A DNA stretch of 64,000 nt from assembly GCF_040938485.1 (NCBI RefSeq), contig NW_027271450.1, positions 310,001 to 374,000 of the forward strand. Reading direction: 5' to 3'. The notes beneath the pieces were generated by a model. That model was given only the letters and a program-made list of their open reading frames with translations, made no database searches and was not told the DNA's origin. The translations under genes were made by a program, and so were the position numbers. Below are positions 621-38,400 of this stretch, piece by piece. Origin of the DNA: Diadema antillarum (taxonomy: Eukaryota). The number at the start of each line of letters is the position of its first letter. The first letter of the stretch is position 1.

Positions 621-3600
621 ATGACACTTGAGCGCGTACTCATCCTGGTGACAGCCGTCTCCTCGGTCTTCGTGGTCGTCACCGCCCAGGCACCCCGGGT
701 CCAACTCCCAGATACCACCTTGATAGGAACCAACCTAGAGTTCAATGAAACGGAGTACCTAGGTGGCGAGATCATCACCATCCGAGCGTTTCTTGGGATT
801 CCCTTTGCCGAGCCACCTGTTGGGGATCTACGCTTCAGGAACCCGGTGAAGAAGGGACCGCTGGGTACGTTCTTCACCGCCGCCCGCGATGGGCCGATCT
901 GCCCTCAGCTCAGTCCAATCGACACCATCGGCGACCTCTTACCAGTACCAATCCCTGTTGGACGAAATGCGGACGAGAATTGTCTCTACCTTGGTGTGCA
1001 TACTGCATCCCCTCAGGTAAGGACCCAAAAACTTCATCTTATGTGTGATGATTCTTCTCAATCTTCCACATCAGCCTTTTCCTCATCCTGTCACTTAAAG
1101 GCATTATATGAACATTTTCAAGTAGAGCATCTACCCCTATTGCTCCCTCCCCCCCCCCCTTCTTCGGAAAATAAAAACTATTGTTGGTCGACGAGTAAAG
1201 TGAAGGTATATAGAAACGTAATGATCAACAATTGTGTTATGAAAAACATACTTAAGGTTATTTATGCAATTAGACAGTCAACTACACGAGTAAAACTTGG
1301 AATGTAGCATCTTGTACAATCCTTGCTTTTTAGACAGGAAAGCACTCACGAAACACTTTGATTTATCATTTGTGATATTATGAAAACATGCAATACAAAC
1401 AGCAAAAGTTGATATAAATACATGTATTTTCTTATTCAAAAGACTATAGGCCTATAAATTTTGAGAAGCAAAAAGTGAGAGAGGGTTAAAAAATGACGGT
1501 ATTCTATAGCACCATTTACCTGTACTTTTGACGAAGAGGCGTAAATCCCTTCCATTTTTACGATTCCCTCTCAAGTCCTATGACTGAGAACTAAATGTAA
1601 CTTGCGTATAGATTGCTAGCACTCATTCATGTTGAGTGAGGTTCTTTTCGATGATTACTATGTTCTCATGTTTCCACAACCAGCCCACGAATGCCCCCGT
1701 GTTGGTGTGGTTTCATGGGGGAGGGTACACCCTGGGAGGGGGTTCCGGCTCAATCTACGAACCCCTCCCCCTCATCGCCGTCTCACCCGAAATCATTGTC
1801 GTGACAGTCAACTACCGACTCGGCGTCTTTGGCTTTCTCACCACTGGTATGTATGACGAAACCATGCCGTCTTGACAAAATGTCGTATGACATTCGTTCA
1901 TCGTACAGTCATAAAAAGAAAAGAAAAAAAATCGCTTGGCTCTCATACCTGTTTTCATCGTTTCTGGCACGTCACAATTCGACACACCGTTGCTCGTATG
2001 TATTTTAGTGCTGCAGGGTACTCATTGTGTAACTAGAAAGATGAATGTATGTGAATCATGATAACATCATAATATGATAGATTCCCTAAGGACGGAACAA
2101 ATTTTGCGCCACACCTTGGAAGGTAAGTCGGGCTAGGGTGAAACACAGATGCAAGTGAGGTTCGTTTATGCCTTCAATAGCACAACAGCTAGTTGGCGAG
2201 CTGCTTTGGCAAGTTCTTTGATTTTCGTCTGCTCCAGACCTTGGTAGTTGATTTCCATTAAACCTCTCAAGACCATTGTACAGCAGCTAAAATCATATTG
2301 ATACTGTACAGACATATTTCTCACGGAACTAAAACAGTTACCCACGGGCACGGCGGGTCGGCACTCCATGACAGACGCCCCGCACATGGCCGAGTTCGGG
2401 AGAGCCGTGGGCTAGCGACCGGAAGACAGCGGGTGAAGAGGGTCCTAAGCAAGACTTACACAAATAAGCCGACATAGCTGGACTCTTTATACTTAATTTT
2501 TATACTTTGTTTTAAACTTCTTTTGTCGTTTGACACAACCACATATCAACCCTTTAGCAACTGACGATTCTGCACACAATGACCTATCATGGCTCCCTGA
2601 AAGGTTGCTCTCATTTCGAATTTCTAAATGTTGTAAAATAGCTCACTCCATGTTCATTTTTGTCTATTATAAGTTCTGTTTATTTGAAAGCCTATTAAGG
2701 TTTTACCAAGAGAATTGTGTGTCACAGAAATAATTCTGACAAATTCTGACATACTGTCTTGACTTTTGACCTCTTTCAGACTACATAATTATAATTACAT
2801 TTTATGCGAAAAAAAAATGGTAAAGTTAAAAACTATAAAAAAAAAAAACCGGACTGGCGGTTTCGGGCGTTTCAGTGACTAATGGGTTAAGTATCTATTC
2901 TGTTAATAAATATTGCTAGATATTTTGCTATGTTCTCAGACATCTTTAAGTGTGGCAGCAAAATGAAAACTTAACAATAAAAGTGTATAAAATTACAGCC
3001 TTAATACTGACCCGAACGCAACCTGTCGCTGTCTTACAAACATGAATATTTAATGGTGCAAGGCAATTAACAAACTATATGGTTCACACACTTTGCATTG
3101 CACATGTTGCACGCGATTTGTTTGGTAAACCATGGCATCACCTGAATTTTATCTTGATTTTTATCATCCTTCGCCTCTAGGTGACAGCGCCTCACCGGGA
3201 AACTACGGCATGCTGGACCAGGTCATGGCGCTAGAATGGGTGCGAGATAACATTCAATGTAAGATTTGTCATTTTCCCTTCTAGGTCCCTTATTGTATGG
3301 AAATTAACATCATGGTTTATGTTTCAGCAGTTCTTCTTTATTTTGACTTAAACTGCTTGTAATTTTCATTCTGATTAAACTTTCTTACTTCAAACATGAA
3401 AAATGAACAATTGAAGATACAGATACATATTTTCTGCATTGATCGTTCCTTACTTTGATTACCGTATACTAATCATTTACAACCTTAACTATTAGGGTAC
3501 ACAAATTATGAAAAACGAACTTACAAACAAAGAAACTCATATTTCGTATTGATGCGACAAACTATGGAAGAAAATCTCAAAACATTTTTTGAAAAGAATG

Positions 3601-37600: not shown

Positions 37601-38400
37601 CATGTGATAAAGTTTGAAACATCAGACAGTGTCATAAAACTTGTTGTCAAATCAAAATATGAGTTTCATTTGGGATTTGAAAGCGTGCAGGAACTGGCAT
37701 AGAGTTCTTTGGGTATTTCATCATGAAACTTACAAAAATATTCAACAATGATAAGTAGGCATGCAGAGTTTGCAGGTTTGTGTGTATGTGTGTGTGTGTG
37801 TGTGTGTGTGTGTTGTTGTTGTTGTTTTTGTTTTTTTTTCGAGGATGACGCTTATATTTTGAATTGCCTATATAATTATGATCCGATAATCGACATTGCA
37901 GTGTTCCTGTGCAGAGAACACATGGAATTACTGCAACTTTGAAGAAAGATTGATAGATTCATATTAGATAGATGCAGAGTACTATTTCTAACCTTTGGTG
38001 ACGGAGAGTAAATGGTCAGGTAAAGGCAATCCTCTGACACGTCTCGCCCCACCACGGGACCCACCACCGGTACGTTGCGGACGGGGCTCATCTGGGGACA
38101 TATAGCCCGATGTTCTGTCGCGTTGTAGTCCTCCATGATTGTGTACGGCTGCGGGTCTTCAAACCGGAGATCGCCCACCGGGGGCACGGCGAAAGGGATG
38201 CCGAGATAGGAGTCGATGGGCTTCGTAAGATTGAGGAAGTCGGATTCATTGTACAACCTCGTGATGCCTGTTAGATTTGCTCCAGATGGCAGAGTGATAG
38301 TTGGCGAACCAATCTGCTCGGCAGTGGCTGCATCAGCGCTGGTAACAAGGCCCAGCAGCGCGATGCATACACTGAGAATCACAGTTCTCACTGAAGACAT
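31614..38400 (-). CDS. Cholinesterase-like type-B carboxylesterase, paralog 4 (8 exons, 616 aa)
   Basis: Exons (minus) 38400-37993, 36490-36328, 35379-35302, 34597-34479, 33999-33835, 33412-32799, 32286-32117, 31747-31614; sum 1851 nt; intron 2 needs a GC donor. Signal peptide [24 protein letters not shown]; SEDCLYL; WIHGGGY; GESAG; GTNEDEM; GATHAEDL; tail [44 protein letters not shown]. Confidence 0.92.
32531..32710. repeat. TTCGGAATAACGAACC-type simple interspersed repeat
   Basis: Repeated GGAATAACGAACCTT units; shares TTTTCGGATTAACAAACCTTCGAAAT with 27309-27415. Confidence 0.7.
35474..35824 (-). mobile_element. tRNA-headed Deu-domain SINE, copy A, with 15-bp target-site duplication
   Basis: Minus-strand A-box TGGTTCAGTTGG, B-box GGTTCGAACCC, core CGGATAGGACATAAAATGGAGGTCCCG...AAAAGACCCC; flanked by ATATTCGTCTGACAT at 35459-35473 and 35825-35839. 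Confidence 0.75.
35840..36205 (-). mobile_element. tRNA-headed Deu-domain SINE, copy B
   Basis: B-box GGTTCGATTCCC; core GGAGGTCCCG...GCACGTAAAAGATCCC...GCAAAGAGCAGGTGTTAACCCGGTG resembles the DeuSINE conserved domain as I recall it; clearly diverged from copy A. Confidence 0.7.
36530..36783. mobile_element. Kolobok-like MITE family B, copy 2 (right arm internally deleted)
   Basis: TTAA|AGGGGATGGCTAGTAACTGATCAG ... TTACTAGCCACCCCCT|TTAA; left arm and loop align with copy 1. Confidence 0.82.

Follow-up and report, generated by a model that had tools for sequence, protein, structure and literature searches.

Tandem T-tailed cholinesterase-fold genes without the aromatic choline-binding gorge in Diadema antillarum

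We analyzed a stretch of 64,000 nucleotides of Diadema antillarum (RefSeq assembly GCF_040938485.1, contig NW_027271450.1, positions 310,001 to 374,000 of the forward strand), hereafter called the window. Its positions 621-38400 carry four tandem, intron-bearing genes of the cholinesterase fold, g1 to g4. Judging from their sequences, we consider it probable that these genes are old paralogues, three of them intact and one frameshifted in this copy, and that they encode secreted carboxylesterases that do not act on choline esters and that oligomerize via a C-terminal tail homologous to the T peptide (WAT) of cholinesterases.

Gene models, catalytic machinery and choline site

The genes were delimited by a self-comparison of stop-free stretches, which gave 8-9 conserved co-linear pieces per gene, and their models were joined by hand from these pieces. 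Three of them (g1, g2, and g4) form one open frame from ATG to stop, and the splice sites are GT-AG throughout, with the sole exception of a GC-AG at intron 2 of g4. These three genes score 460-470 bits against Pfam COesterase (PF00135, E ~1e-138), for a curated cut-off of 27. The closest solved relatives, by sequence and by structure, are acetylcholinesterase (AChE) and butyrylcholinesterase (BChE), and the AlphaFold model of g4, with a predicted local distance difference test (pLDDT) of 91, finds its best structural matches in AChE. All four products start with a typical signal peptide, have 5-8 N-glycosylation sequons and no predicted membrane span, and carry three Cys pairs, a free Cys at the position of Torpedo C231, and a Cys in the tail. 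The ratio of nonsynonymous to synonymous substitution rates (dN/dS) between g3 and g4 is 0.14 overall.

We aligned g1-g4 with vertebrate AChE and BChE, insect and brachiopod AChE, and echinoderm and hemichordate cholinesterases, and we use the Torpedo AChE numbering. The four genes retain the S200, E327, H440 triad, the G118/G119/A201 oxyanion hole and E199, and the catalytic residues are invariant or nearly so among 76 relatives. The aromatic residues that bind choline are absent. The position of W84 is occupied by Ile in g1 and by a gap or Pro in g2-g4, whose loops are three residues shorter, and the omega loops delimited by the first Cys pair contain not one Trp. These loops lie at 900-983 on the forward strand in g1, where the loop is Pro-rich, and on the reverse strand at 18641-18715 in g2, 27534-27608 in g3, and 38026-38100 in g4, where the AlphaFold confidence is low at residues 107-112. 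Across the four genes, D72 of the peripheral site is replaced by P, Y121 by T, S, N or A, F330/F331 by LI, SQ, SV or SA, and Y442 by E; Y70, F288 and F290 are replaced too, and Y334 is R in g1, A in g4, and F in g2 and g3. The acyl pocket is made of aliphatic or small residues. In total, 4-5 of the 14 gorge aromatics of Torpedo AChE are left (BChE has 8), and those common to all four genes are W114, Y130, W233, and W432.

Most of this had been proposed in an initial annotation of the window made from the sequence alone. Its four secreted cholinesterase-fold paralogues are where it had placed them, and the signal peptide, the three Cys pairs, and the WAT-like last exon are present in all four. 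The omega-loop strings, the GESAG and NEDE motifs and the catalytic His were quoted exactly, and the alignment upholds the substitutions at W84 (I, or P/gap, and no Trp in any of the omega loops), Y121, F330/F331 and Y442, as well as the small or aliphatic acyl pocket. The change of Y442 to E is nevertheless not diagnostic, because canonical invertebrate AChEs carry D at this position. The mention of four enzymes says too much, as g3 is frameshifted in this copy, which had been missed.

The individual models are as follows. Gene g1 (621-9272, forward strand) has 9 coding exons (621-1016, 1684-1846, 3181-3258, 4033-4151, 5097-5264, 5864-6223, 6969-7234, 7767-7933, 9148-9272), all bounded by GT-AG, and encodes 613 amino acids identical to XP_071500638.1, bar one extra Glu in the RefSeq protein. 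This Glu is at the junction of exons 8 and 9 (7933/9148), and we could not obtain it from the sequence of the window by using GT-AG splice sites. The other genes are on the reverse strand. Gene g2 (10675-18994) has 8 coding exons (18994-18608, 17768-17606, 16247-16170, 15388-15270, 14534-14373, 13918-13305, 12913-12744, 10802-10675) and encodes 606 amino acids with 100% identity to XP_071500639.1 (Pfam COesterase E 1.3e-140). Gene g4 (31614-38400) has 8 coding exons (38400-37993, 36490-36328 with the GC donor, 35379-35302, 34597-34479, 33999-33835, 33412-32799, 32286-32117, 31747-31614) and encodes 616 amino acids with 100% identity to XP_071500640.1. The donor of its intron 2 (window 36327-36326) reads GCAAGC, where g1-g3 carry GT. 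The three RefSeq proteins, all on one 1.28-Mb contig, are named "acetylcholinesterase-like [Diadema antillarum]". Hence, g1, g2, and g4 are already annotated, though misleadingly, which is the mislabelling by pipelines that the initial annotation had anticipated.

Gene g3 (20775-27905) has the architecture of g4 and is 93% identical to its intact orthologue in D. setosum (P0191), which aligns to it without any other gap than the one breaking its frame. More precisely, the large exon contains a 5-nt insertion (22122-22126, TAGCC on the gene strand, i.e., the reverse strand) that causes a frameshift and introduces an in-frame TAG. The insertion is absent from g2, g4, and the D. setosum protein, all four genes being intact in that species. 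It is also absent from another contig of D. antillarum, JBFRCO010000276.1 (locus L002), which is co-linear with window positions 680-46803 at 84-97.5% identity and whose g3 copy is in frame at the insertion site. Since both D. setosum and L002 are without the insertion, the break is specific to this copy, where it represents a null allele of recent origin or else a mistake in the assembly. We rejected its interpretation as a tiny intron, as it has only 5 nt. RefSeq has no annotated protein for g3, i.e., none between XP_071500639 and XP_071500640. As D. setosum has a single cluster, L002 (JBFRCO010000276.1:1312839-1364026) is most simply the other haplotype of the locus. There, the RefSeq protein XP_071492970.1 (1218 aa, "uncharacterized protein") joins a g4-like first half to another half with 85% identity to g2 and 72% to g3. 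This model, from the second cluster copy, probably results from read-through or is chimeric.

The omega loop varies further outside Diadema. The g3/g4 orthologues of S. purpuratus (P0152), L. variegatus (P0188), and a Logan transcript (P0189) have an insert of 15-20 residues within this loop, rich in Pro and made of PxP repeats, which the Diadema genes do not have. That the Pro-rich omega loop contacts the Trp-rich tail is pure speculation.

The C-terminal tail

The four genes end in the motif W-x6-W-x7-W-x3-F-x2-Y-x6/7-C, encoded by a separate last exon. This exon is at 9148-9272 on the forward strand in g1, where six residues separate the Tyr from the Cys, and on the reverse strand at 10675-10802 in g2, 20775-20908 in g3, and 31614-31747 in g4. 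A set of 57 distinct echinoderm tails shows three invariant Trp and an invariant Tyr, with a nearly invariant Phe. When the profile of these tails was searched against all PDB sequences, it matched WAT chains only, with 1VZJ on top (E 2.5e-9), followed by human BChE 534-571, human AChE, and Torpedo AChE. In Pfam, three of the four window tails have AChE_tetra (PF08674) as their first-ranking family, with scores under its curated cut-off: g2 (E 3.6e-4, model positions 1-35 of 35), g4 (E 0.034), and g1 (E 0.051), where it is the sole family match. It matches 41 of the 57 echinoderm tails at E<=0.01 and figures among the precomputed Pfam domains of the relative P0203.

The gene structure provides evidence that is independent of these matches. 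The intron preceding the tail is in phase 1, and the codon that it splits is exactly nine codons ahead of the first Trp. The next intron upstream has phase 2 and interrupts the Gly codon of TG|NPN. Gar AChE, Lytechinus AChE, and g1-g4 have both introns at identical positions and phases. The tail of g4 is modelled by AlphaFold as a single helix (residues 575-607), and the tail exon is under constraint, with a g3/g4 dN/dS of ~0.12. A 2.1-kb Logan contig from another sample contains, without introns, the coding sequence of a 607-aa relative including its tail, and is most simply a transcript. By its sequence profile and intron position and phase, the tail is a true homologue of the T peptide of cholinesterases, as the initial annotation had put forward.

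We made two further observations on the tails. Some members of the clade have no tail Cys and end with a KDEL-like xEL (KEEL, RDEL, RNEL, HNEL, KDEL), in Acanthaster (P0206, P0208, P0223), Amphiura (P0212, P0216, P0220), and hemichordates (P0235, P0237), which suggests forms resident in the endoplasmic reticulum (ER) like vertebrate carboxylesterases. Besides, the synonymous divergence between g3 and g4 is 0.33 in the tail exon vs 1.06 in the rest of the gene, and their similarity runs beyond the stop codons (window 20641-21076 vs 31354-31787). Gene conversion at the 3' ends may be behind the lower divergence of the tail exon.

Family distribution, phylogeny and neighbouring features

The nearest relatives of g1-g4 are all echinoderm proteins, named cholinesterase-like or AChE-like. 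Members with a T tail and without W84 are found in all five echinoderm classes (echinoids, holothuroids, asteroids, ophiuroids, and crinoids), and the clade has at least 9 loci in D. antillarum and at least 12 in S. purpuratus. Echinoderms also have canonical AChEs, with W84, D72, F330/F331, Y334, and a T tail, which we identified in Lytechinus, Asterias, and Holothuria. Therefore, g1-g4 are not the AChE of the animal.

In a tree of 80 catalytic domains, built after removal of the tails, the proteins without W84 form one clade with a support of 100 in the approximate likelihood ratio test (aLRT). This clade includes only echinoderm and hemichordate sequences, among them a tail-less hemichordate subclade, in line with the lineage-specific family suggested by the initial annotation. 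Its sister group is made of the canonical cholinesterases (aLRT 97), protostome AChEs included, and the carboxylesterases (CES) and neuroligins fall outside. A tree of 41 rows agrees with that of 80, with aLRT values of 100 and 97-99 for the placement as sister clade. We considered an origin of the clade within the T-tailed AChEs of echinoderms and hemichordates, because the x7 spacing in the tail is common to both. The approximately unbiased (AU) test on the catalytic domains rejects the grouping of the clade with four such AChEs (p ~1e-4, 41 rows), with the caveat that the model was LG+G4 and that faster evolution of the clade could pull it outward in the tree and bias the test.

The initial annotation stated that these enzymes have lost the gorge, and this wording has to be changed. 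As the clade is sister to all canonical cholinesterases, it is established that it lacks the gorge and not that it lost it: a single gain on the stem of the cholinesterases requires no more steps than a single loss, and the gorge may never have been present in this lineage. One could tentatively go further, although we think the odds are rather against it, and propose that the T-peptide exon, and with it the assembly of WAT/PRAD type, predates cholinesterase activity and has a wider distribution. The ancestor shared by the true cholinesterases and this clade would then already have been a T-tailed oligomeric carboxylesterase, to which the aromatic gorge was added later on the cholinesterase branch only, and the window genes would keep a pre-cholinergic state rather than a degenerate one.

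The window contains a few other features. The last intron of g2 has two foldback inverted repeats, at 10912-11378 and 11624-12018, whose arms measure 180 nt (82% complementarity) and 183 nt (94%), respectively. They look like miniature inverted-repeat transposable elements or foldback transposons, and related sequence occurs at 36582-36794, in intron 1 of g4, and at 48300-48848. At the end of the window, an open frame of 529 aa rich in Lys and Glu (62414-64000, forward strand) has no Pfam match and runs off the end, which probably makes it part of an adjacent gene, as one large exon.

Proposed function, alternatives and known systems

The genes fall in a clade with the carboxylesterase type-B fold that is, among the sampled sequences, restricted to echinoderms and hemichordates and sister to the true cholinesterases. 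Their predicted products are serine esterases that are secreted and N-glycosylated and whose Ser-Glu-His triad and oxyanion hole are intact. The substrate would very probably be a non-choline carboxylic ester, because the aromatic choline-binding gorge is absent. The tail is a separately encoded and selectively maintained T homologue with a C-terminal Cys, and such a tail, by homology, most likely leads to a cholinesterase-like assembly, in which disulfides link the dimers and tetramers and amphiphilic helices wind round a peptide rich in proline. The oligomerization, matrix anchoring, and lipase-like wide pocket evoked by the initial annotation are inferences only.

Several points weigh against this proposal. 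One of the four copies, g3, is broken in this sequence. The window tails reach only 20.6, 14.3, and 13.8 bits against AChE_tetra, for a cut-off of 25, and that of g3 has no match. The spacing between the second and third Trp is 7, and not 6 as in vertebrates, and there is a Pro in this stretch in g2-g4, which could disturb a WAT-type superhelix. We found no biochemical test of the family in the full-text literature, in a search that missed most subscription journals, and there is no RNA run listed for D. antillarum. The points on the tail would fit active esterases whose tail no longer tetramerizes and serves only as a dimerizing Cys tail or as a signal for ER quality control or secretion, as would the relatives that have no Cys and end with xEL. 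What speaks against it is the invariance of three Trp and the Tyr, and the near-invariance of the Phe, over 57 tails, as well as a tail dN/dS of 0.12. The tail is moreover modelled as one continuous helix, and the one-residue stutter (W-x7-W) also exists in the canonical AChE tails of Lytechinus, Asterias, Holothuria, and Saccoglossus. We thus regard a non-tetramerizing tail as unlikely, albeit the most serious of the alternatives. The frameshift and stop of g3, with the lack of a listed RNA run, could also reveal a decaying cluster of pseudogenes or barely used genes. This is very improbable considering the complete frames and clean splice sites of g1, g2, and g4, the four intact genes of D. 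setosum, the g3 copy of L002 that is in frame at the insertion site, and the overall dN/dS of 0.14.

The function of the catalytic domain can be questioned too. The RefSeq name, the AChEs found as best solved relatives, and the retention of E199 and W233 along with the oxyanion hole and T tail speak for true cholinesterases, which would here bind choline at an unconventional site. We find this improbable: W84, D72, Y121, F330, F331, and Y442 are all replaced, the genes are outside the canonical cholinesterase clade, and echinoderms hold canonical AChEs with W84. Non-enzymatic members are numerous among cholinesterase-fold proteins, and g1-g4 could by analogy be adhesion or matrix proteins of the neuroligin or gliotactin type. 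With a triad and an oxyanion hole that are intact and conserved, no membrane span, and a position in the tree far from neuroligins, this is the least credible of the alternatives. Secreted non-choline carboxylesterases with an oligomerizing T tail are hence the explanation we favor.

The T peptide is regarded as characteristic of cholinesterases. In the present case, it is found on a large and diversified clade of esterases that are unable to bind choline in the known way. As a consequence, it would be a mistake to take for AChE dozens of echinoderm proteins annotated as "acetylcholinesterase-like", a point to bear in mind when cholinergic genes are counted or AChE biomarker assays are interpreted in sea urchins. 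The clade is natural material to study the role of the WAT tail independently of cholinergic function, and it bears on which came first in the evolution of cholinesterases, the choline gorge or the oligomerization tail. We found no description of T-tailed non-cholinergic esterases of echinoderms in the full-text literature, a search that left out most subscription journals and ESTHER, so we do not claim that they are undescribed; in Pezzementi 2011 (PMC3045457), S. purpuratus appears only as one of the species of the tree.

The window genes resemble the vertebrate AChE-T and BChE (Torpedo and human AChE, human BChE, 1VZJ) in their fold, with a template modelling (TM) score of ~0.9 and 32-36% identity, in the triad, oxyanion hole and three disulfides, and in the C-terminal T exon, whose intron position and phase are identical and which has a near-terminal Cys. 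Their tails hold seven aromatic residues, as in the vertebrate enzymes. In contrast, they are without W84, D72, Y121, F330/F331, and Y442, have a small or aliphatic acyl pocket and a Pro-rich omega loop, have the second and third Trp of the tail one residue further apart, and are outside the canonical clade. They also have 7-8 introns, whereas gar AChE has 3 and that of Lytechinus 2. The canonical AChE-T of Lytechinus (P0326), Asterias (P0322), Holothuria (P0330), and Saccoglossus (P0331) come from the same phyla and share the W-x6-W-x7-W spacing and the same two 3' introns, but they keep W84, D72, F330, F331, and Y334 and group with the other cholinesterases. The vertebrate CES1-5 are, like the proposed products of g1-g4, non-choline serine esterases of the same Pfam family and without the W84 gorge, and they have the KDEL-like xEL end seen in some echinoderm members of the clade. 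Unlike the window genes, they have no T peptide, and they are an outgroup to the cholinesterases and the window clade in the tree. Finally, the nematode ACE-1, a true AChE with a T-like C-terminus, is an example of a T-type tail outside vertebrates.

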